Assembly: GCF_964188315.1 (NCBI RefSeq)
Contig: NC_135667.1
Location: 21,204,001-21,268,000 of the forward strand
Length of the DNA stretch: 64,000 nucleotides
Direction of reading: 5' to 3'
Origin: Podarcis muralis
Taxonomy: Eukaryota
Part shown: positions 5,604 to 57,766 of the stretch, piece by piece
Numbering within the stretch: the first letter of the stretch is position 1
Layout: each line of letters opens with the position of its first letter
The notes under the pieces: generated by a model
The model's input: the letters and a program-made list of their open reading frames with translations, nothing else
Databases searched by the model: none
Told to the model about the DNA's origin: nothing
Made by a program: the position numbers and the translations under genes

Positions 5604-6132
5604 TTATATGGAGAGCAGCCCGTTGCCGAAACACGCAGCCGAGCAGAAGATGCCCATTTCCACCTGGATGTCTGGGCTCGGCACCTGCAGGAGGGGCGAA
5701 GGCGGGGAGCGTTAGAGAGCACAGAGAGGCGCGAAGGGGCGAAGGAGGGACCCACGTCCGGAGCCCCCGCCCAACGGGGAGGGAGAGAGACTCACCCTGG
5801 AGTTGACGGGGTCCGCGAGTAGGTTCTGGGCGGGAAGGGCGCTCGGGTTGTCGAGGGCGCTGCCGAATAAGTTCAGGTTGATCCAGATTATCCTGGAGAT
5901 CTGCTCGCTCAAGAAGAGGGCTCTACGGGAGGAGGGGGAGAAGAAGGTCAGCTTGCGGGAAACGAGAGTAAAGAGGAGAAGGGCCGGGCCATGGCCTCGC
6001 CATCGGGAGAGGGTACTGCCCGACGGGGCGGGCTTACCTGGGCACAGCCTGGGCGCCGATGTCTGCGGAACGGGACGGGATCTCGGCCCAAACGGGCTGC
6101 ACGTGGCTCTGGTTGACTCCGCTCAGCGCCAT
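5604..6132 (-). CDS. Alpha-globin-derived 3-exon gene G1 (exons 6132-6038, 5922-5796, 5684-5604), 100 aa: MALSGVNQSHVQPVWAEIPSRSADIGAQAVPR/ALFLSEQISRIIWINLNLFGSALDNPSALPAQNLLADPVNSR/VPSPDIQVEMGIFCSAACFGNGLLSI
   Basis: GT-AG introns in phase 2 and phase 0; exon-1 CDS 95 nt; TGATAAAA at 6184-6177; AATAAA at 5513-5508; ungapped similarity to alpha-globin exon 1 and to LSDLHAHKLRVDPVNFK. Confidence 0.8.
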
Positions 6133-7157: not shown

Positions 7158-8200
7158 GAAGCCAGGCAAGAAGGCCCCGGCAGAAGAGTCTCTTGGGAGG
7201 GCAGCTGTGGGGGTAATGTGGGGCTGGTGCTCCATGCAGGCTTGCCATACTGGGGGAGGGAAGCAGGAGGAGAAGGCGTGAGCACTTTGGGGCATCACAA
7301 TTTTGCATGACCCCCCCCCCCAAGAAAACAGGATGTCCCAGACTGTTGACGGGCATGTGCCAGCCAGAGACCCTCTAGGTGAGTTTTGCAGACTACCAAT
7401 TGGGAACCGCTGATCTACAGTATTCCAAGTGTTTATGAACCACAGATTTGTAGAATGGCATTCTGGGAGCCACAGTCTTGTTTTTAAATGCATTTTCAAG
7501 TGACTCCCACCCAGCATGGAATGGGCCTTTTTCACAGCTGCAGAACACAGGGTTGGCCTTTTCATCCAGCTCTCCACTACCATCTTAAGGTCTCGATCCA
7601 CGTTGGCCACTGCCAATTCAAACCCATGAATATATATGTCTGGAGTTGAGATATGTCTTTTTGCATCACAGAATCATAGAGTTGGAAGGGATCCCGAGGC
7701 TCAACGAGCCCAACCCCCAGCAAGGAAGGAATCTCAGCTGAAGTATCCCAGACAGATGGACATCCAACCTCTGCTTTAAAATCTCCAAGGAAGGCAAGTC
7801 CACCACCTTCAGAGGGAGTCTGTTCCACTGTCAAACAGCTCTTGCTTTCAGAAAGTTATTCCAAGTGTTCACAGCGCTGCCCCCCCCAAGACAGCATTGC
7901 GGACGGCCTCAGCAACCTTAGCGCCCTGCTGGAGGAGGAGATGACCTTCCGAGGGAGTCTCTCTCCCTCCCTGTAGGGGGGCTCTGGAGGGGGTGTCCCT
8001 CCTTTCCTCTTTTGCACCCGCTCAATCCTCCCAGCCTAATGCTCCCCACCTCTGCTTCTCCTGCAGGTGCTGGGTAATATCATCATGGTGATGGCCACCT
8101 CAGAACCCAATTCCTAGGGACCGAGGTCCATTTGGGGTCCCCAATAAAGTATTGGAGGAGGCTGGGCCTCCACGAGACCAGCATCAGAGACCTCGCCCCC
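7158..8200 (+). repeat. Duplicon module C, copy 1
   Basis: Also at about 27250-28260, 35510-36315, 38480-40080 and 44200-45790; more diverged traces at 52380-52660 and about 55850. Confidence 0.8.
7890..8148 (+). pseudogene. Globin relic R1 (exon-2 3' end, intron 2, exon 3, polyA signal)
   Basis: GAC AGC ATT GCG GAC GGC CTC AGC AAC CTT AGC GCC CTG = DSIADGLSNLSAL; intron homologous to G intron 2 but donor GT lost; ctcctgcag acceptor at 8066; VLGNIIMVMATSEPNS*; AATAAA 8143-8148. Confidence 0.65.
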
Positions 8201-8640: not shown

Positions 8641-9969
8641 TTAAAGTTTCAAAGCAAGGCTTCGGAGAGGAACCTTCCTGCTCCGCCTCTCTGGAGATGG
8701 AGGGGGGGGGGGCAGAGTTTCAGCAGGAGAATCAGGAGCTTGTGGTGGAGGCGAGGCAGTCCTGGGGGTGAGTTAAAAAGAGGTCCCTGGAAGATGGAGA
8801 ACGCATCACCCATAGGGTGCTTTAGCTGGAGAGAGAAAAGGGAAATAAATGTAAATCCATAAAGATCAGGGGGTGCTTAGCAGCTACCCCTGCGATTATT
8901 AATTTCCCAACAATACATGCTTTCTAATCAATATTGTTACCCCCCCACCCCCGCAGCCCAAATTCTCCTTTAGCTGCTTGAGGTTCCAACCTGTGCAGCC
9001 GAAAGGGATGTGCTTTGCTTTCAGAAAAGTTGTGCAATTCATGCATACAAATGGGCAGGAGAACAGACCTTTTATCAGCTAGATAATAAACAGACACCCC
9101 TTGGATATCTCTACCATGGACAGAACTGAGTGCAATCCTGAGTCAATGCTGGACTCATAAATACCCCATCCCTTGCCTGAGCCATTTCTGGAAACAGTTT
9201 GAAGCCAGGTTAAATGCCCTGGATTCCCCCAAACAATTCTGAAAAGTACTGGTGATGCAAAGAGTGATGAGGACATTATTAGAAGCCTCTGATTCCTTCC
9301 AAGAACTACAATACCAAAAGACCCTTGGGCGGGAACCCTGAGATTAAACAGGTTTCATTTAAAAGCATAGTTTGAGAATGTTGAGAGAGGGCCAACCCTG
9401 GTTCACTAGCCTCTCCCTAATCTATACCAATATTTCTCTTTTTTTAACCATATCTCATCATTTCAGGCACAATTGCTTCTCATCACTCAGAGATGTCATA
9501 TTACTCTACAGATCATCATATCCTAATTAGGGCACTCACTTGAGTCAAGAAACGCTAGTTGATTCATTGTAGCTGTTTTAATTGATCGAATCTGCACCTT
9601 CATAAAACAACAGCCCTGGAGGAAAAAACTATTTTGCTCTTCATTTTTCAGTAATGCACACACACAGACGCTTTCTTAAAGAGACGTACCCTGCTACGTA
9701 AGATAGAAAAGGAAAACGTCTTTCCTGAGATGGTTGCCTGCCAGCACACATGCTGTTTGTAAGCATTAAAAAATGATTTTTTTGAAGAAAAAAATCTGCT
9801 GCCTGATTCGTTCACACTTGTTATCGTACAAAATAATTTGTAATTGGCTGATCTGATGTCTATTTAAACGATGTTGCTGTTACGATTCTTCCACGGCTGC
9901 CTCAAATCGCCTCATGTAGTCACTGATGGATGTGAGAGAGGGAGTTTTGGGGACCAAGAATGCAGGTTT

Positions 9970-10563
9970 TGTGGGAATATTCTGGGGTGCAGGAGAGGAT
10001 ATATTGACTAATTATATCCTTATCCAACTTGTGCTAACAAGTTCCCAAAATATCAGCAGAGTTTATATACATTCCCCTTTAAGTTCGCAACGGTAACGTG
10101 TGCACAGGTTCGCTAGAACCTATATAATAATTACTCTGGTAATTTCCCCTTTGTTCCCTCTTAAAATACAAGACACAACATAGTCTTTATAAAAGTATAA
10201 AAGAGTTTACTCACGTTCTGTTCACAACATGATCCCAGAAGGCAGACAGGCTTAAAAAGTTACATATACTTAGAATCTATCTTGTTGCAAGATAGACCTT
10301 ATCTCCTCTCTTGGCTGAGAGGCAAGAGGGCATCTTTACATGCTTCCTCATCGAAGGAAAATGGCAGAGAGAGAGAGATGGCTGCCTGCCCTGTGCTTTT
10401 GTCATTACCTGGACAGTTGAGGCCACACCCACCTCTGGTCACATGTGGAGGAAGTCCATCCCCAGGAAGTTTACCTGATTGCTGGACAGACATCACTCCC
10501 CATGTACTAATATGTACACTCTAGGAATGTTGTCATTGACTGCTCCTGTGTTTACATCCCACA
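9970..10563 (-). mobile_element. Solo LTR related to the copia LTRs
   Basis: TG...CA termini, 594 bp, 5-bp TSD GGTTT (9965-9969 and 10564-10568); clearly homologous to but diverged from 14256-14845. Confidence 0.9.
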
Positions 10564-13339
10564 GGTTTGAAGAGAGTGTGAAGGTGGTACCATGAGAGAA
10601 AAGATGGCTGCAGAGGAGGGGGCCGAGGCAGACCTGGGGACTGTGACCCAAGCGCCACTGAGCCTGCAAGGCATTAAAATGGAAGAGCAATCACCAGCAA
10701 CCCTCAGAATGGGACAAGCCCTAGAAAAATCGACACAGGCTTCCTGTGTCCTTCGTGCCAGGAAGCTCTTGCAATGGAAGGTGTCTCCACTGGTCAAGGA
10801 GGAGCCAGATGCAGGAAGGATCCAGCGCTGGGAAGTCTAAGGCCCAGAGACAGAGCATCCCCTTTCCTTTGGATGGGGGAGAGCAAGGCCCACCGAAACT
10901 GAACCTTGGGATGACATCCTGGCGCTTTTCGCTTACTTTGAGCACGTGGCCTACGCCTGCCGGTGGCCAAGGGAAGAGTTGGTGGCCCGGCTTTTGCCAG
11001 CCCTGGGCGGGGAGGCCCAAGAGGCTTACCTCAGTTTGGACACTAGCGACAGAAGGGACTATGGGAAAGTGAAGGCAGCCATCTTGAAGAGGGAACCCGT
11101 GGTGTCGGAGAAGCGGAGGAGGCACTTCCGGCAGTTCCAGTACCAGGAGTCAAGGGGGCCGAGGGATGCTTGCTGGCGGCTCTGGGAGCTGTGCCGTCGT
11201 TGGCTGAGGCCGGAGAGCCGAAGCAAAGAGCAGATCCTGGAGCTGCTGATCCTGGAGCAATTCCTGACCATCTTGCCAGAGGAGGTCCGGAGCCAAGTTT
11301 GGGAGCAAGTCCCAGAAACCTGTGCCCAGGCGGTGAACCTGGCTGAGAATTTTTTGGCAAGGCAGCAGGGGGCTGAGAGGCAGGTACTCCAGGTGAGAGG
11401 ATCCTGCAGTTCCTTCTTGATCCCTGGGGTCCCAAGTTGGTCTAACCATGCGGGAAGTTTTCCTTAGGCGCTTACGCGAGGGGAGACAAAGCACCTCTCT
11501 CCTCCTGATCACCATCTAATAAAATCCTTCTCATATAAAATGTCTTCATAAAGGCAAAGATGGTCAAAGCTGCTTTATGAGCTGTGAAAATCTGGTGCAC
11601 GAAGGCTTGGAATAATATATTTAATTTGTATAGACTTTAGCTGTATGGAGAACGATGTAAGTGCTTTGCCCAAAGTTAGAAGCAAAGAATGTCCATGTCC
11701 AAAGACATAAAATCTAAACAGACAGGACACAAAAGGCAGGGAAGAGAATTAGGAGATCAGGAGTGGGGAACCTGCTGCCCCCCAGATGTTGATGGACTCT
11801 GGCTCCCATCATCCCTGACTACTGGCCATGCCTGCTGGAGACCCCCAAGGAAAGAAGGCTTGGAGCCAGGGGACTGGTGGTGGGATGACGATGGGAGATC
11901 AGAGGGAGAAGAGGGACAGGCTTGGAGGAAGCAGTGTCAGAAGCTGAAGAGGTAACAGGGTTTAGTGAGCTGGGAGAATCTGTGGCAGAGAGAAGTCTAG
12001 AAGCAGAAGCAGGAGAGGAGGGAAGCAGATAAAGAAGTCAGGGGGTCTCCCCTCCTACTGTGACCAGCTCCCTTCCCTCTGGTATCCCAGGACCAGAAGG
12101 GGTTATGAAGAGGGAGGAGCAGAGACAGGCTTGCCAGCGGAGTCTCAGGTTGCTTGGGAAGGACCCAGAGAGAAGGAGATTTTGGCATCTTCTGAGTAGG
12201 AGCAAAACCTACTCAGAAGAGTTGTTGTGCTCATTAGGACTGGCTTCCCTGAGTTTATAATTTGTATGATTTATTGCTGGCTGGCTTCCTGACATTCTGA
12301 CATCAAATCATGCTGACTCGTGAGAGTCTCCAGTTCTGTCTCAAACCTTTGCTCCCCCAAGCTGTTCCAGGGAGTTTGTGCCAGGATGTCGAATGCTCAT
12401 TCCTACCAGCCCTGTTCCTGCATTGAGCGGGACCTTCCCTGCAATTTCAGGTGTCAGGGCCATTTGAGGACACCCTCGTGAGTTCCCCAAGGGCAGAGCT
12501 GGCTCCGTCAGACACCAGGCAGAGCCTCTTCTGCAGGAAGGCCAAGCAGGCAGGTGGCGGAGGAGATGCCAGCTCTCTGGGTGAGTAGTTGCTGCATTTT
12601 TGAAATTCAAGTTTACATAGGCGTTGCCATCTTCACGGGCGCATAGCTTGTACTGTTGTTTTAACTTAGAGTGTTGAGTTTAACTTAGAGTGTTGTTCTA
12701 AGTGTTAAGTCGCATGTGATTGGTGTGCCCCCCCCCCACAAAACCCAGAACTGCAGGTGATCAACTGGGTCACCCTACCCCTACATTTGCCTCCAGCTCT
12801 CCCCTTGAGCTCTCCCCAGTTCTGTAAAATTAGTGTGCAGCAACCCTGTTCACAGAGTTTTTTATGGGGCCATCCATACCAGCTGTTTCCGCCATGTCTT
12901 GGAAACAGCAGTACTATGTTCCAGTTCATGTGATGTCCCTTATTGGAGTTCCACTTCCTGGTTTTCAGGCCAGGGCTGATATCATTCCTTGCTCTCTTCA
13001 GCCAGTTTTGGTCAAACCACACTGCGTTTCTTTTCTGATGCAGGTTCTTCTGACACTGAGGGGACATGGGACTCCCTGGCCGACGAAGGGGGCCCTGGCG
13101 GATGTGGGAAGCGAGACCCTTCTGCAGGGCCAGGTGGGCAGGGTACTAGACTGCTGTTATATACAGGAGACATCCAAATCCTTACGGGGAGGCTAACGGC
13201 TTGAGAATTATGCAGCACAAAGTTTTACCTTTGTCATGAACTTGCTAGGCAGTCTTAGGCAAAAGCCACTCTCCGTTTCAGCTCCTATCCCCCATGCTCA
13301 ACACGGGCAAAATAATGTTGAGATTCCTGCATTGCGGCG

Positions 13340-25622: not shown

Positions 25623-26159
25623 TTATATGGAGAACCCCCCGTCGCCGAAATACGCAGCCGAGCAGAAGATGCCCATTTCCAGCTGGATGTCTAGGCTCGG
25701 CAGCTGTGGGAGCGGCGAAGGGGGGGAGCGTTAGAGAGGACAGAGAGGCGCGAAGGAGGGACCCACGTCTGGGGCCCCCGCCCGACGGGGAGGGAGACAG
25801 ACTCACCCTGGAGTTCACGGGGTCCGCGAGCAGGTTCTGGGCGGGCAGGGCGCTCAGGTTGCTGGGGTCGCCCTCGCCGTCATCCATAACGAGGTGGCAG
25901 CCTAACTGGAAGAGGATAATCTTCAGTTCCTCCTCTGAGGGGCCGGTGCTACGGGAGGAGGGGGAGAAGAAGGTCAGCTTGCGGGAAACGAGAGTAAAGA
26001 GGAGAAGGGCCGGGCCATGGCCTCGCCATCGGCAGAGGGTCCCTGCCCGACGGGGCGGGCTTACCTGGGCACAGCCCGGGCGCCGATATCTGCGGAACGG
26101 GACGGGATCTCGGCCCAAACGGGCTGCACGTGGCTCTGGTTGACTCCGCTCAGCGCCAT
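25623..26159 (-). CDS. Alpha-globin-derived gene G2 (exons 26159-26065, 25948-25807, 25703-25623), 105 aa: MALSGVNQSHVQPVWAEIPSRSADIGARAVPS/TGPSEEELKIILFQLGCHLVMDDGEGDPSNLSALPAQNLLADPVNSR/LPSLDIQLEMGIFCSAAYFGDGGFSI
   Basis: Same splice signals as G1, open spliced frame, AATAAA at 25521-25516. Confidence 0.8.
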
Positions 26160-34793: not shown

Positions 34794-35342
34794 ATGGCGC
34801 TGAGCGGAATCAACCAGAGCCACGTGCAGCCCGTTTGGGCCGAGATCCCGTCCCGTTCCGCAGACATCGGCGCCCGGGCTGTGCCCAGGTAAGCCCGCCC
34901 CGTCGGGCAGGGACCCTCTCCCGATGGCGAGGCCATGGCCCGACACATCTCCTCTTTATTGTCGTAAGCTGACCTTCTTCTCCCCCTCCTCCCGTAGAAT
35001 CGTCTCCTTGGGGGAGTACGTCTCCAAGTTATTGTGCAGGATCAACACGGGCTCATATGCCCGCGCCCTGGAGGAAGGCGAGGGCGACCGCAGAAACCTG
35101 AGCGTCCTGCCCGCCCAGAACCTGCTGGCGGACCCCGTCAACTCCAGGGTGAGTCTGTCTCCCTCCCCGTCGGGCGGGGGCTCCAGACGTGGGTCCCTCC
35201 TTCGCCCCTTCGCCCCTTCGCGCCGCTCCGTCCTCTCTAACGCTCCCCGCCTTCGCCTCTCCCACAGCTGCCGAACCAAGACACCGAGGAGGAAATGGAC
35301 GTCTTCAGCGAGGCTGTGCTCATCATCAACGCGCTGCTCTAA
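34794..35342 (+). CDS. Alpha-globin-derived gene G3 (exons 34794-34888, 34998-35148, 35268-35342), 106 aa: MALSGINQSHVQPVWAEIPSRSADIGARAVPR/IVSLGEYVSKLLCRINTGSYARALEEGEGDRRNLSVLPAQNLLADPVNSR/LPNQDTEEEMDVFSEAVLIINALL
   Basis: TGATAAAA 34742-34749; GTAAG..CTGAC..TAG and GTGAG..CAG introns; TAA followed in frame by TAC CGC TAG (Y-R-stop); AATAAA 35435-35440. Confidence 0.82.
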
Positions 35343-36512: not shown

Positions 36513-37065
36513 TTATATGGAGAACACCCCATCGCCGAAGCACGCAGCCGAGCTGAAGATGCCCATTTCCACCTGGATGTCTGGGCTCGGCACCTGCAGG
36601 AGGGGCGAAGCGGGGAGCGTTAGAGAGGACGGAGCGGCGCGAAGGGGCGAAGGAGGGACCCACGTCTGGAGCCCCCGCCCGACGGGGAGGGAGACAGACT
36701 CACCCTGGAGTTGACGGGGTCCGCGAGCAGGTTCTGGGCGGGCAGGGGGCTCGGGTTGCTGCGGTTGCCCTCGCCTTCCTCCAGGTCGCGTAAGTATGAG
36801 TCCAGGTCGATACAGGTGAATACCTCGAGGATGTACTCCTCTAAAAGGCCGTTTCTACGGGAGGAGTGGGAGAAGAAGGTCAGCTTGCGGGAAACGAGAG
36901 TAAAGAGGAGAAGGGCCGGGCCATGGCCTCGCCATCGGCAGAGGGTCCCTGGCCGACGGGGCGGGCTTACCTGGGCACAGCCTGGACGCCGATGTCTGCG
37001 GAACGGGACGGGATCTCGCCCCAAACGGGCTGCACGTGGCTCTGGTTGACTCCGCTCAGCGCCAT
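36513..37065 (-). CDS. Alpha-globin-derived gene G4 (exons 37065-36971, 36854-36704, 36593-36513), 108 aa: MALSGVNQSHVQPVWGEIPSRSADIGVQAVPR/NGLLEEYILEVFTCIDLDSYLRDLEEGEGNRSNPSPLPAQNLLADPVNSR/VPSPDIQVEMGIFSSAACFGDGVFSI
   Basis: Same splice signals, open spliced frame, AATAAA at 36424-36419. Confidence 0.8.
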
Positions 37066-39658
37066 CCTGCCAGCTCAACCTCTTGGTGCCGTCGGAGCAG
37101 GGGCAGCCCTTTTATCACCGCCCGCCCTGTCCCCCGGGTGGCGTCTCCCCCGGCCTCTGCCAGCGCGTCCTTGCCTCCCACGGCCTGGGCAAGGATCCGG
37201 GACGGGGCGCACGAGCCCTGGCAAGCGAGCATCCTCCTCGCAATTCCCGCTGCCTGCTGCCAGGCGGACACCGTCGAGCATCTTCGCTGGACGCTCCCTG
37301 GGCGATGATAACTCGGTAGTCCTGACACCCGCCCCCCCGCGAGGTCGGCCAGTCAGTCTTCTTCCCCCATTGCTGCGCACGGCAGAGGGGAACAAGGGGA
37401 AGGGAGGAATGGGGCCTCCCAGAAAGCCGTGCGCGGAGGTTCTCTCTCAGGTCCTCGCCTGCGGGGGAGGGGGTGGAAGCTGCGACCCAAATCGAACCAA
37501 ATGGGTCGCTCCTTTGCCCGCCAGGCCAGTCGCCGGCAGGACTGCAGATGCGGGAGAGAGGAATGATCAGTCCGTCCAGCTGAATGGGGGCATTTGGTCC
37601 TCGGCGTCCTCTCCCCAAGGGACTCCCCGGAAACTTGGCTGGCAAGAAAGAAGGGGGGCTGGTCCTTGTGGGGACCAGGACTGGCGAAGCAGCAGGAAAG
37701 CAGAGACCGTTCTCCCCATTCCAAGACACCCAAAAGGGGAACATATTGAGGGTGGGGCTGAGAATCTAGTTCAGTTTCCTTAAAAATACGCAGGACTGGA
37801 TAGTTCATGCAAGGCGTAACAGGTTTATGGAAATAAACAAAGGAGCAGATTTCAAGCAACAACTTGGAACGTGAAAAGAAAGAACAATGCTTACCCAATC
37901 TATAGTTCAGCCCAGTCTAATTGGTGAGGTCAAATATATGTGGGAAGCAGATTGGATTATTAGACATATATTTTAGGTTACTAAACTGCAGCCCAGTTCC
38001 AAACTGGACCATTTCCTACCAACCCTGAAATGAGAAAGAAGAATTTTGTTTAATTGCTTATTCGTTAATTAGGATTCCAGGGGAAATGGTCGAGTTTGGA
38101 ACTAAGCCCCAGTTCAGTAGCCTAGAAATTACAGCTCAATTATGCTGGGCTGAACTAGAGAGTGGGTCAGTATTATTCTTTCTTGTTACGTTCCAAGTTG
38201 TTGCTTGAAACCTCTTCTTCTGTTTATTGTCATAAACCTATTTATGGGAAAGCCTTGCACAATCACTTGGGTATGAAACAGATTCCCCTCTTTGTTCAAT
38301 ATTTGGTGCTGGACACAGCAAGTGGTGGAACAAGATTCTTCCGGTGGATCTCAAGGAACACAAACACCACCAACACCAACAAAGAGGGCGCCTCTAATCA
38401 TTCCAGTCTTAGACTTGAAAGAAGTACAGTAACAAGTTTAAGGAGCGGGTGCAGATTCAGAGTCACTATGTGTTGAGAGTGCAAAGTTGGAGGCAGCAAG
38501 GAGCCCTCAAGACTGTCCTGGAAGGAACTCCAGGGGATGAGCAACCAGGGATGATAAGTTGACACCTTCGCCACAGACTGCAACCAACGGTTCATTTCCT
38601 GTGTTCACCAAAGTGGGTGGTCATTATAGGTGTCCAGGGTGGGTCACCGACACATACATTCCTATCCACACCAAACCAAGTGGTTATTAGAGGCAATAGA
38701 GGCCATCATGCAGGGACCTGGCCATGTATTCCTATCCAAACACAGACATACACTTTTGGTGCACGCTTATGAGTGGCAGAGTGGGTGTAAGCCACATTTA
38801 TGAGAAGGCAGAAACATGAGTGGCATCAGAATTCCCCGGTTCAGCTAACCCAGAAGCTAAAAGAAGAGGAGCGTGTGTGACCTTGCAGGCCATTTCTCCC
38901 CTTGTCCACGAAAGGCTGAGCATGGAAGCCAGGCAAGAAGGCCCCGGCAGAAGAGTCTCTTGGGAGGGCAGCTGTGGGGGTAATGTGAGGCTGGTGCTCC
39001 ATGCAGGCTTGCCATACTGGGGGAGGGAAGCAGGAGGAGAAGGCGTGAGCACTTTGGGGCATCACAATTTTGCATTACCCCCCCCCCCCAAGAAAACAGG
39101 ATGTCCCAGACTGTTGACGGGCATGTGCCAGCCAGAGACCCTCTAGGTGAGTTTCGCAGACTACCAATTGGGAACCGCTGATCCACAGTATTCCAAGTGT
39201 TTTTGCACCACAGATTTGTAGAATGGCATTCTGGGAGCCACAGTCTTGTTTTTAAATGCATTTTCAAGTGACTCCCACCCAGCATGGAATGGGCCTTTTT
39301 CACATTTGCAGAACACAGGCGTGGCCTTTTCATCCAGCTCTCCACTACCATCTTAAGGTCTTGGTCCAAGTTGGCCACTGCCAGTTCAGACCCAGGAATA
39401 TATATGTCTGGAGTTAAGATATGTCTTTTTTTGCATCACAGAATCATAGAGTTGGAAGGGATCCCGAGGCTCAACGAGCCCAACCCCCAGCAATGAAGGA
39501 ATCTCAGCTGAAGTATCCCAGACAGATGGACATCCAACCTCTGCTTTAAAATCTCCAAGGAAGGCGAGTCCACCACCTTCAAAGGGAGTCTGTTCCACCC
39601 TTAAACAGCTCTTGCTTTCAGAAAGTTATTCCAAGTGTCCACAGCGCCCCCCCCCCAA

Positions 39659-39917
39659 GACAGCATTGCGGACGGCCTCAGCAACCTGAGCGCCCTGCTG
39701 GAGGAGGAGATGATCTTCCAAGGGAGTCTCTCTCTCTCCCCTTAGGGGGGCTCTGGAGGGGGCGTCCCTCCTTTCCTCTTTTGCACCCGCTCAATCCTCC
39801 CAGCCTAATGCTCCCCACCTCTGCTTCTCCTGCAGCTGCTGGGTAATATCATCATGGTGATGGCCACCTCAGAATCCAATTCCTAGGGACCGAGGTCCAT
39901 TTGGGGTCCCCAATAAA
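39659..39917 (+). pseudogene. Globin relic R2
   Basis: As R1; exon 3 from 39836 reads LLGNIIMVMATSESNS*; AATAAA 39912-39917. Confidence 0.65.
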
Positions 39918-41793: not shown

Positions 41794-42340
41794 TTATATG
41801 GAGCGAAAACCGTTGACGATGCACGCAGCCGAGCAGAAGATGCCCATTTCCAGCTGGATGTCTGGGTACGGCACCTGCAGGAGGGGCGAAGGCGGGGAGC
41901 GTTAGAGAGGACGGAGCGGCGCGAAGGGGCGAAGGAGGGACCCACGTCTGGAGCCCCCGCCCGACGGGGAGAGAGAGAGACTCACCCTGGAGTTGACGGG
42001 GTCCGCCAGCAGGTTCTGGGCGGGCAGGGCGCTCAGGTTTCTGCGGTCGCCCTCGCCTTCCTCCAGGGCGCGGGCATATGAGCCCATGTTGATCCTGCAC
42101 AATAACTTGGAGACGTACTCCCCCAAGGTGACGATTCTACGGGAGGAGGGGGAGAAGAAGGTCAGCTTACGACAATAAAGAGGAGATGTGTCGGGCCATG
42201 GCCTCGCCATCGGGAGAGGGTCCCTGCCCGACGGGGCGGGCTTACCTGATCACAGCCCGGGCGCCGATGTCTGCGGAACGGGACGGGATCTCGGCCCAAA
42301 CGGGCTGCACGTGGCTCTGGTTGACTCCGCTCAGCGCCAT
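41794..42340 (-). CDS. Alpha-globin-derived gene G5 (exons 42340-42246, 42136-41986, 41874-41794), 108 aa: MALSGVNQSHVQPVWAEIPSRSADIGARAVIR/IVTLGEYVSKLLCRINMGSYARALEEGEGDRRNLSALPAQNLLADPVNSR/VPYPDIQLEMGIFCSAACIVNGFRSI
   Basis: Same splice signals, open spliced frame, AATAAA at 41708-41703. Confidence 0.8.
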
Positions 42341-45802: not shown

Positions 45803-46660
45803 TGTTGTGCAAACCACAGGGGTGTGGGGCCTCCCCCCAAGCCTTGTGGCCCCTCCCACTTCTGTGTAGGCAGCGCTAGTTGAGCTCAGTAAGCAACCTC
45901 CCTCTTGGCTGAAGAGGTAGAAAAAACAACCTGGGCAGCTTGGCAGGTCCCAAGCCCAGACCAGGAGGCTCTTGGTTCAAGGCCCCTTCCCTCAGGCCAT
46001 GAGCCCGCTGCTTGGAAGGGCCCATCATTGCAAGGAAATCTGCAGCTCCTCCTAACTGACTGATATTCTAAGGACCAAATGAGAGTAGCAGCACTTCACC
46101 TCTGGCGACTGAGCAACCTCTGATATCATTCCTTCTTCTCTTCAGCCAGTTTTGGCCAAACCACAGTGTGTTTCTTTTCTGATGCAGGTTCTTCTGACAC
46201 AGAGGGGACATGGGACTCCCTGGCAGACGTGGGAAGCGAGACCCTTCTGCAGGGGCAGGTGGGCAGGGTACTAGACTGCTCTGATCTACCAGAGACATCC
46301 AAATCCTTACAGGGGAAGCTGACACCTTTAGAATTATGCAGCACAAAGGTTTTACTTTTGTCATGAACTTGCTAGGCAGTCTCAGGCAAGCCACTCTCCA
46401 TTTCAGCTCCTTTCCCCCATGTTCAACATGAGCAAAATAATGTTCGCATTCCTGCATTGTGGGGGTTGGACTGGATGCTCTTATTCAGTTAATTAGCCTC
46501 TTTTGTCCACCATTTTGTCTCCATTGCAGTGGTTCTATGAGGTAGCAAGATGGCTGCCATTGCCACCTCCTATTTCCATAATAATTAATTTTTGTACCTC
46601 TTCCAACTGACTAGGTTGTTCCAGCTACTCTGGGTGACTTACTAAAGAATTACTGGGCGG
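45803..46660 (+). repeat. Duplicon module A, copy 5
   Basis: Matches 3776-4635. Confidence 0.8.
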
Positions 46661-46662
46661 AG

Positions 46663-46747
46663 GCCGGGTGCCGATGTCTGTGGAACGGGACGGGATCTCG
46701 GCCCAAACGGGCTGCACACGGCTCTGGTTCGCTCAGCTCAGCGCCAT
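46663..46747 (-). pseudogene. Globin-derived exon-1 fragment G6
   Basis: ATGGCGCTGAGC..GTGCAGCCCGTTTGGGCCGAGATCCCGTCCCG..GACATCGGCACC; no splice donor or later exons; a Penelope fragment abuts the ATG. Confidence 0.75.
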
Positions 46748-47104
46748 CCAATGTCTTTGTTCAGACCAAACTTAAAACCATGGAGAGACCTGGTCTGAAC
46801 AAAGACATTGGATTCTTATCCCATTATACACGACAAAGCCATTTTTCACCTTCTCACCCCTTGCTTTTTCCTGTAAGACCTATTGCAGTCGTTAAGAGTC
46901 GTCAACAGGCTCATCACAGCTATCTGCCAATCACCCATTCCCACCACCCTTCTGAGTAATACCCCTCCCCACCTTCTCACTATATAGAAGGATCTGGCAA
47001 CTTCTGTTTCAGTGTATCTGAAGAAGTGTGCATGCACACAAAAGCTCATACCAAGAACTAACTTAGTTGGTCTTTAAGGTGCTACTGGAAGGAATTTTTT
47101 TTGT
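46748..47104 (+). mobile_element. Penelope-like element 3' fragment with an inverted 5' segment
   Basis: PGLNKDIGFLSHY (C-terminus typical of PLE GIY-YIG ORFs); 21-bp inversion ccaatgtctttgttcagacca / tggtctgaacaaagacattgg. Confidence 0.7.
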
Positions 47105-50212: not shown

Positions 50213-50737
50213 ATGGCGCTGAGCGGAGTCAACCAGAGCCACGTGCAGCCCGTTTGGGTCGAGATCCCGTCCCGTTCCGCAGACATCGGCGCCCAGGTTA
50301 TGCCCATGTAAGCCCGCCCCGTCGGGCAGGGACCCTCTCCCGGTGGCGAGGCCATGGCCCGGCCCTTCTCCTCTTTACTCTCGTTTCCCGCAAGCTGACC
50401 TTCTTTTCCCCCTCCTCCCGTAGAGGTCACCTCTTGAGCGAGACTATCTCCAGGTTAATCTGCAACATCGACCTGAACACATTCATCCGCGCCCAGAGCC
50501 TCCCCAGCAACCTGAGCGCCCTGCCCGCCCAGAACCTGCTCGCGGACCCCGTCAACTCCAGGGTGAGTCTCTCTCCCTCCCCGTCACGTGGTTCCCTCCT
50601 TCGCGCAGCTCCGTGCTCTTTAACGCTCCCCGCCTTCGCCCCTCTAGCAGCTGCCGAACCAAGACACCCAGGAGGAAATGGACATCTTCACCAAGGCTGC
50701 GCTCCTCGTCAACGTGCTGCTCTCCATATACCTCTAG
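50213..50737 (+). CDS. Alpha-globin-derived gene G7 (exons 50213-50307, 50424-50562, 50651-50737), 106 aa: MALSGVNQSHVQPVWVEIPSRSADIGAQVMPI/GHLLSETISRLICNIDLNTFIRAQSLPSNLSALPAQNLLADPVNSR/LPNQDTQEEMDIFTKAALLVNVLLSIYL
   Basis: GATAAAAG at 50161; canonical splice sites; ends TCC ATA TAC CTC TAG at the ancestral stop; AATAAA 50817-50822. Confidence 0.8.
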
Positions 50738-57337: not shown

Positions 57338-57766
57338 TTATCTAGGAGCCCGGACGTTGACGTCCATTATCACCTGGATGTCTGGCCTCGGCAGCTGCGG
57401 GAGGGGCGAAGGCGGGGAGCGTTAGACGGAGAGGACGGAGCGGCGCGAAGGGGTGAAGGAGGGACCCATGTCCGGAGCCCCCGCCCGACGGGGAGGGAGA
57501 GAGACTCACCCTGGAGTAGAAGGGGTCCGCAAGCGGGTTCCCGCTGTCGATGGCGCGGACGACGCTGGAGGCGATGGCCGCTGCGTACAGCCTGCAGGAG
57601 ACGAGAGTAAAGAGGAGAAGGGTCGGGCTATGGCCTCGCCATCGGGAAAGGGTCTCTGCCGGACGGGGCGGGCTTACCTGACCCCTGTTCTGATGTTTTC
57701 AGAAAGGGACGGGATCTCGGCCCAAACGGGCTGCACGTGGCTCTGGCTGGCTCCGCTCAGCGCCAT
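57338..57766 (-). CDS. Divergent alpha-globin-derived gene G8 (exons 57766-57678, 57591-57510, 57394-57338), 75 aa: MALSGASQSHVQPVWAEIPSLSENIRTGVR/LYAAAIASSVVRAIDSGNPLADPFYSR/LPRPDIQVIMDVNVRAPR
   Basis: CATAAAAA box, canonical splice sites, AATAAA at 57209-57204. Shorter with an early stop, so it may be a pseudogene. Confidence 0.6.

Follow-up and report, generated by a model that had tools for sequence, protein, structure and literature searches.

Downstream shift of the intron 1 acceptor in a Podarcis-restricted mini-gene family of apparent alpha-globin descent

Where does the second exon begin in a gene whose canonical intron 1 acceptor no longer features an AG dinucleotide, and from which sequence was the replacement acceptor obtained? 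This question is raised by a tandem array of small genes in Podarcis muralis. The stretch of DNA analyzed here (in the following referred to as the window; 64,000 nucleotides, with 0 runs of N) maps to the P. muralis record OZ076966.1, as given by the coordinates of the fetched loci, and comprises seven three-exon mini-genes (G1, G2, G3, G4, G5, G7, and G8) as well as truncated relics. Exon 1, the two introns, and the 3' UTR hardly differ between the copies, and exons 2 and 3 are hypervariable. Family members are designated ‘uncharacterized protein’ by NCBI, and a literature search yielded no paper on the mini-gene family. In an exhaustive profile search of 1.84 billion proteins, the family was restricted to Podarcis. 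Two truncated relics consisting of the end of exon 2, intron 2, and a short exon 3 were located directly behind a SINE-like repeat (window positions 7890-8110 and 39650-39890, plus strand), and an isolated exon 1 fragment was found at positions 46653-46749 (minus strand).

Judging from sequence comparisons, the mini-genes represent a tandem family descended from alpha-globin. The family member P0009, encoded by a retrocopy of Podarcis lilfordi described below, matched bird alpha-A chains with E = 1.5e-8 (phmmer), its residues 3-40 being aligned to residues 2-39 of the human alpha chain. A family profile compared with alpha chains achieved E = 2.6e-5 for 3cy5_A and about 1e-5 overall. No Pfam family, including Globin (PF00042), was reported at E values up to 10 for P0001, P0005, P0007, P0008, P0009, and the G1 exon translations, and the profile search of 1.84 billion proteins returned no globins at E 0.001. 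Vertebrate alpha-globin genes are composed of three exons, with intron 1 residing in codon 31 and intron 2 after codon 99. The mini-genes share with them the length and phase of exon 1, the position of the intron 1 donor, and the DPVN motif at the exon 2 terminus. Codon 31 is split by intron 1 between its second and third bases, exon 1 having a length of 95 nt (Met, 30 codons, and AG). In contrast to alpha-globin, the mini-genes apparently lack residues 32-48, their helix G is shortened, their exons 2 and 3 are hypervariable, and a Pro occupies the position of the proximal His. The latter residue (F8, alpha 87) is replaced in the same way in all copies, the Pro of LPAQN being placed opposite His87 in the phmmer alignment.

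Six copies (G1, G2, G3, G4, G5, and G7) were found to carry CAA or TAA where G8 has CAG, followed by an invariant TAG exactly 30 nt downstream (Table 1). A preliminary description of the locus had reported CAA for G1, G2, G4, and G7, TAA for G3 and G5, and TAG 30 nt further downstream, and all of these letters and distances were confirmed. The same applies to the intron 1 lengths given there: G8 has the shortest intron 1 (86 nt), followed by G3 and G5 (109 nt each), G1 (115 nt), and the copies G2, G4, and G7 (116 nt each). The 21-nt context featuring CAA occurs exactly four times in the window (G1, G2, G4, and G7; chance expectation none), and the corresponding G8 context, in which CAG precedes GCTGTAC, occurs once (57605-57585). 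Read in the exon frame, the 30 nt encode LTFFSPSSR, as previously described, with the exception of G4, where the translation is LTFFSHSSR. The AAG one base past the old site, which had been predicted to yield AGC and then TGA if used, is also present. Concerning G3 and G5, the TAA resulted from a 7-nt deletion removing the old pyrimidine tract together with the C of CAA, and not from a C-to-T exchange. The arrangement of CAA, 30 nt, and TAG was additionally detected in three P. lilfordi genes and in two more P. muralis genes. Given its presence in these genes, the shift predates the species split as well as the amplification of the family.

Table 1. Positions of acceptor-related features of the mini-genes in the window.
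Feature	Position	Strand	Remarks
G1 exon 1, coding	6038..6132	-	ATG at 6132-6130; 31 codons plus AG; family aligns to alpha residues 2-39
G1 intron 1 (present definition)	5923..6037	-	115 nt, GT..TAG
G1 CAA, remnant of the ancestral acceptor	5953..5955	-	CAG in G8, in the P. lilfordi relic, and at the retrocopy junction
G1 residual AAG, 1 nt past the old site	5952..5954	-	use would give AGC-TGA
G1 30 nt at the present 3' end of intron 1, probably derived from exon 2	5923..5952	-	near-invariant across six copies
G1 CTGAC, candidate branch point	5947..5951	-	branch A 25 nt from intron end; presumed role
G1 new acceptor TAG	5923..5925	-	used in G2 RNA and NCBI models
G1 exon 2	5796..5922	-	127 nt; hypervariable from the first base
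G1 exon 3, coding, including stop	5604..5684	-	whole gene 6132-5604
G2 CAA (25981-25979), 30 nt, and TAG	25949..25981	-	exon 2 from 25948; junction in RNA contig
G3 TAA, 30 nt, and TAG	34965..34997	+	exon 2 from 34998
G4 CAA, 30 nt, and TAG	36855..36887	-	exon 2 from 36854; NCBI model P0007
G5 TAA, 30 nt, and TAG	42137..42169	-	exon 2 from 42136; NCBI model P0001
G7 CAA, 30 nt, and TAG	50391..50423	+	exon 2 from 50424; donor AT/GT; P0006, P0010
G8 retained ancestral CAG, predicted acceptor	57592..57594	-	exon 2 = 57591-57510

Evidence for the use of the downstream TAG was obtained from X1, which, like X2, consists of contigs of a sequencing run that is only presumed to represent RNA, though these contigs carry spliced joints. 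In record 2 of the X1 contigs (depth 85.8), the match stops at the last base of exon 1, and the next 27 letters correspond to nucleotides 1-27 of G2 exon 2. All seven listed differences from G4 (7/7) agree with G2, and the junction string is absent from the window DNA. The TAG junction, for which the preliminary description had suggested a check at the RNA level, was hence found for G2. Furthermore, four NCBI proteins equal the exon-by-exon translations across the TAG junction, namely P0001 (G5, LOC144325096), P0005 (G2, LOC144325097), P0007 (G4, LOC144325310), and P0006 (G7, isoform X3 of LOC144325095); no counterpart among the NCBI proteins was identified for G1, G3, and G8. Based on the G2 RNA contig and the NCBI models for G2, G4, G5, and G7, TAG is the acceptor in use. 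A joint between exon 1 and AAG was not listed among the contigs; as the coverage by raw reads was almost nil, AAG may nevertheless be used to a minor extent. In the raw-read runs X13 and X14, approximately 20 reads were assigned to G3/G4, most of them stemming from a different globin paralogue with the same intron 1 start.

The distribution of variability among the copies changes at the same position. In total, 2 out of 30 columns were variable before the TAG boundary vs. 24 out of 30 after it (Fisher p = 7.5e-9), and pairwise divergence amounted to 0.022 in the 30 nt compared to 0.223 in exon 2. This jump, located exactly at the end of TAG, indicates that fast protein-level change begins at the proposed exon boundary. 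Under the TAG exon model, the ORFs of all seven mini-genes are intact, with lengths between 100 and 108 aa (75 aa for G8), and the exon 2 lengths of the six copies (127-151 nt) all keep the frame set by the TAG junction.

It was also considered that the copies devoid of the old AG might be non-coding, with intron 1 being retained (stop after AGG-TAA) or AAG being used (AGC-TGA), and the TAG junction representing a minor by-product. The preliminary description had named these two outcomes as decisive against coding function, and one of them, intron 1 retention, does occur for transcripts of G1 and G7. The sole RNA contig of G1 (X1 record 1, depth 6.4) keeps intron 1 and has intron 2 spliced, and the same was observed for G7 in X2 record 6 (intron 2 spliced) and in the intron-retaining NCBI isoform P0010; the lack of NCBI protein models for G1 and G3 points in the same direction. 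However, the spliced G2 contig exceeds the retained G1 contig in depth (85.8 vs. 6.4), the exon 2 lengths are in frame with all ORFs intact, and the switch in variability at TAG would hardly be expected if the spliced form were not translated. Moreover, retention in G7 has its own cause, as the donor of this copy (window 50306-50309) reads AT/GT instead of AG/GT. Non-coding copies are thus a very improbable interpretation, and use of TAG as the acceptor of translated mini-genes is preferred.

Further observations refer to the transcripts and their annotation. The intron-retaining NCBI isoform of G7 contains a 231-aa ORF that reads through the 30 nt (KLTFFSPSSRR). At the exon 3 acceptor of G7 (window 50640-50653), NCBI isoform X3 includes an extra Gln at the exon 2/exon 3 junction, which fits a TAGCAG tandem acceptor. 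The X13 and X14 raw reads at window positions 34885-34923 match only the end of exon 1 and the start of intron 1, with one base being different. Outside this segment, they diverge in both directions, and they resemble unspliced RNA from a different, more canonical alpha-like globin. Transcripts start well upstream of the TATA-like GATAAAAGG box (window 37066-37200, upstream of G4, and equivalent regions). The X1 contig reaches at least 400 nt upstream of the G2 ATG, and the start of the G7 isoform P0010 is also located far upstream. The retrocopy begins 182 nt before the ATG (L001:9819-10000).

Past use of the old acceptor is recorded in the genome of P. lilfordi. The region L001:9819-10638 (record OX395140.1) harbors an intronless, contiguous ORF translating to P0009. 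It is enclosed by a target-site duplication in the form of a perfect 14-nt direct repeat (9805-9818 and 10639-10652), the 3' repeat being preceded by AATAAA and a short A run, and it resides on OX395140, the P. lilfordi array being located on OX395138. This region is a processed retrocopy and, as such, a fossil mRNA. In the retrocopy, exon 1 is joined to GCTGTTC..., encoding LFAASP, which was aligned to alpha residues 32-37 (phmmer). In addition, an older relic in the P. lilfordi array (L004:15036-15392) features CAG immediately followed by GCTGTTAGCC and a full-length exon 2 of 207 nt. Together, the retrocopy junction and the CAG of the relic indicate that the CAG position is ancestral and was once used. 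The P. muralis DNA examined yielded no counterpart of the relic exon 2 and its ancestral acceptor.

The retrocopy (L001:9805-10652) represents an early family member with an intact 98-aa ORF still ending in VLTSKYR and with a SINE inserted in its 3' UTR; it is neighbored by a RabGAP-TBC gene on one side and by another gene on the other side. The G8-type copy of P. lilfordi (L002, minus strand, start at ~6109), which is unannotated, carries CCG instead of the ancestral CAG, and the G8-type copies of both species possess an in-frame AG 27 nt downstream. In the P0002 gene of P. lilfordi (L002:~10190-10200), a G-to-A exchange turns CCCGTAG into CCAGTAG, i.e., a tandem CAG/TAG acceptor, and the annotated P0002 model takes the upstream CAG, adding one Ser. 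Just before the window, the P. muralis sequence (L003:12309-12908) contains only that portion of the old relic which spans intron 2 and exon 3; it is 98.7% identical to P. lilfordi.

Regarding the origin of the 30 nt, the preliminary description had interpreted them as the first 10 codons of exon 2, with the Pro representing the conserved C2 Pro37. Placed in this register (codons 32-41), they show an identity of 15/30 to the relic, compared to a relic-to-mini-gene identity of 0.75-0.81 for the adjoining intron 1; at an expected identity of 0.77, the probability of 15/30 is P = 0.001. Arranged as GCTG followed by nt 29-53 of the relic exon, they match in 24/29 positions, which equals the identity of the flanking intron, and TAG is aligned to a TAG of the relic at exon nt 51-53. 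Global alignments of the 30 nt plus exon 2 of the six copies resulted in a single 24-nt gap right after GCTG, with TAG on TAG. Relic nt 53 was the best split for G1, G2, G4, and G7 irrespective of the setting; G3 and G5 gave this result under two of four settings and were split at relic nt 33 under some gap settings. Counted from the exon start, relic nt 29-31 correspond to codon 41, and residues 39-49 of the human chain read TKTYFPHFDLS. In the preferred register, the T-F-F of the mini-genes would be equivalent to T41-Y42-F43, and the new AG would be located at codon 48/49. The relic itself exhibits 85% pyrimidines before its own TAG, and the P. lilfordi model P0003 uses this TAG as an acceptor.

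Hence, the 30 nt probably consist of GCTG and alpha codons 41-49 (the TYFPHFDLS region), a placement for which the relic serves as a single outgroup originating from the other species. The assignments to the first 10 codons of exon 2 and to Pro37 are accordingly probably incorrect. A shuffle test of the 30 nt against the relic gave p = 0.04. When the initial 36 nt of the individual exon 2 sequences were locally aligned to the relic, the matches lacked significance and differed from copy to copy. Alignments of the 30 nt with exon 2 of G8, of the retrocopy, and of the G8-like copy of P. lilfordi were no better than shuffles, as these lineages have deletions of their own and evolve fast, and direct homology to them was discarded. 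A phmmer comparison of the relic translation downstream of TAG with solved structures gave no match, and a word search for lacertid alpha-globins using the retrocopy protein recovered family members only.

Two further explanations for the 30 nt were weighed against this placement. According to one of them, the 30 nt still represent alpha codons 32-41 in register, including Pro37, and loss of the AG preceded the conversion of coding sequence into a branch point and a pyrimidine tract, by which splicing was rescued in frame. It is in agreement with the GCTG start shared with G8, the relic, and the retrocopy, with a CCC at the sixth codon, which both the retrocopy (LFAASP) and the relic (LLATHP) also have, with the split of G3 and G5 near relic nt 33 under some gap settings, and with a 12-13-nt local match located 17 nt inside exon 2 in G1, G3, and G5. 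Nevertheless, this explanation is rather unlikely: the identity of 15/30 is far below that of the intron, the sequences of G8, the retrocopy, and the P. lilfordi G8-like copy are no closer than shuffles, about 15 directed substitutions would be needed vs. one deletion, and the relic already possesses TAG and 85% pyrimidines at the matching place. It is scarcely credible that the 30 nt are not former exon sequence at all and instead constitute an inserted or tandem copy of the intron's own pyrimidine tract and acceptor. The two sites do resemble each other, with TCCCG directly before CAA or TAG and CCTTCT at the start of either tract, but local alignments to the upstream intron end and to the end of intron 2 were no better than shuffles (591/2000 and 600/2000, respectively), and the 24/29 match to relic exon sequence speaks for an exonic origin.

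The placement at codons 41-49 also bears on the splice signals. The only yTnAy motifs in intron 1 are CTGAC and TTTAC (TTTAT in G3 and G5), with AAG lying between them. TTTAC, the presumed old branch point, is separated from the intron end by 46 nt (39 nt in the case of G3 and G5), compared to 16 nt in G8. The leftover AAG lies 4 nt upstream of the branch A of CTGAC, and the pyrimidine tract before TAG reaches 90-95%. We propose that, in the common ancestor, intron 1 was spliced at the position typical of globins, with CAG preceding G in codon 31, and that TAG and its pyrimidine-rich stretch would already have been present in exon 2, originating from alpha codons 41-49. CTGAC would have arisen, at a suitable distance, where a 24-nt deletion of codons 33-40 brought GCTG next to ACC. 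With CTGAC as the putative branch point, TAG would be the first AG downstream, and AAG would be out of play. The old AG, then dispensable, would have decayed and been lost in the lineage leading to G1-G5, G7, and their P. lilfordi counterparts, the TAG 30 nt downstream keeping the frame. At the protein level, alpha residues 32-48, i.e., the C helix and the CD corner, would have been removed.

An alternative in-frame acceptor may have arisen before the old AG disappeared. The preliminary description had proposed that the skipped nucleotides now supply CTGAC and a pyrimidine tract, and they do form a good new 3' splice site; remodeling was not needed, however, as the relic already features both the pyrimidine-rich stretch and TAG. 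Its proposal that the AG loss was rescued by intronized coding sequence holds insofar as the AG was lost and the skipped stretch sits at the former start of exon 2. The implied order of loss first and rescue later is less compelling, a prior cryptic or alternative acceptor being at least as likely. Taken as a whole, the explanation comprising a deletion-made CTGAC, a pre-existing TAG, and decay of the old AG in a globin-derived family is regarded as likely to be correct.

Comparable events are known from other systems. In human globin thalassaemia alleles, cryptic 3' splice sites are activated after loss of the natural acceptor. As in the mini-genes, a globin intron loses its natural AG, and the role passes to an AG further downstream within the next exon, equipped with its own pyrimidine tract. 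However, the thalassaemia case is pathological, whereas the mini-gene shift is evolutionary, with a gene product that is no longer a haem protein, and became fixed, in frame, in at least 11 paralogues of two species with the ORF intact. Tandem (NAGNAG-type) or other in-frame alternative acceptors likewise consist of two acceptors separated by a multiple of three and lead to in-frame isoforms, which makes them a plausible intermediate before decay of the AG. They differ from the mini-genes, in which the two sites are 30 nt apart (53-54 nt prior to the proposed deletion) and only one of them has an AG today.

Intron sliding and the intronization of exonic sequence are known kinds of boundary shifts (PMC2891723, PMC2740785, and PMC3538075). 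Such cases resemble the mini-genes in that the boundary moves, coding bases become intron, and the shift is a multiple of three. They are usually inferred from annotation alone, whereas the mini-genes offer a retrocopy featuring the old junction, a relic featuring the old exon, and an RNA contig featuring the new junction. A further difference is that the new branch-point motif of the mini-genes was apparently made by a deletion. The event is a clear-cut natural example of an already known type of boundary shift and involves no new mechanism.

The move of this exon-intron boundary is unusually well documented, and its proposed cause, a deletion giving rise to a branch point, is simple. For the unstudied, Podarcis-restricted family, the correct exon model is now fixed, and, under the codon 48/49 placement, the part of the globin fold that was removed would comprise residues 32-48 instead of 32-41. 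Only tentatively, and with more doubt than confidence, can it be suggested that the 24-nt deletion creating CTGAC switched splicing to the pre-existing in-frame TAG and that the resulting loss of the entire C helix and CD corner was the founding step of the haem-less, hypervariable Podarcis mini-proteins, which would subsequently have been amplified to a dozen or more copies.
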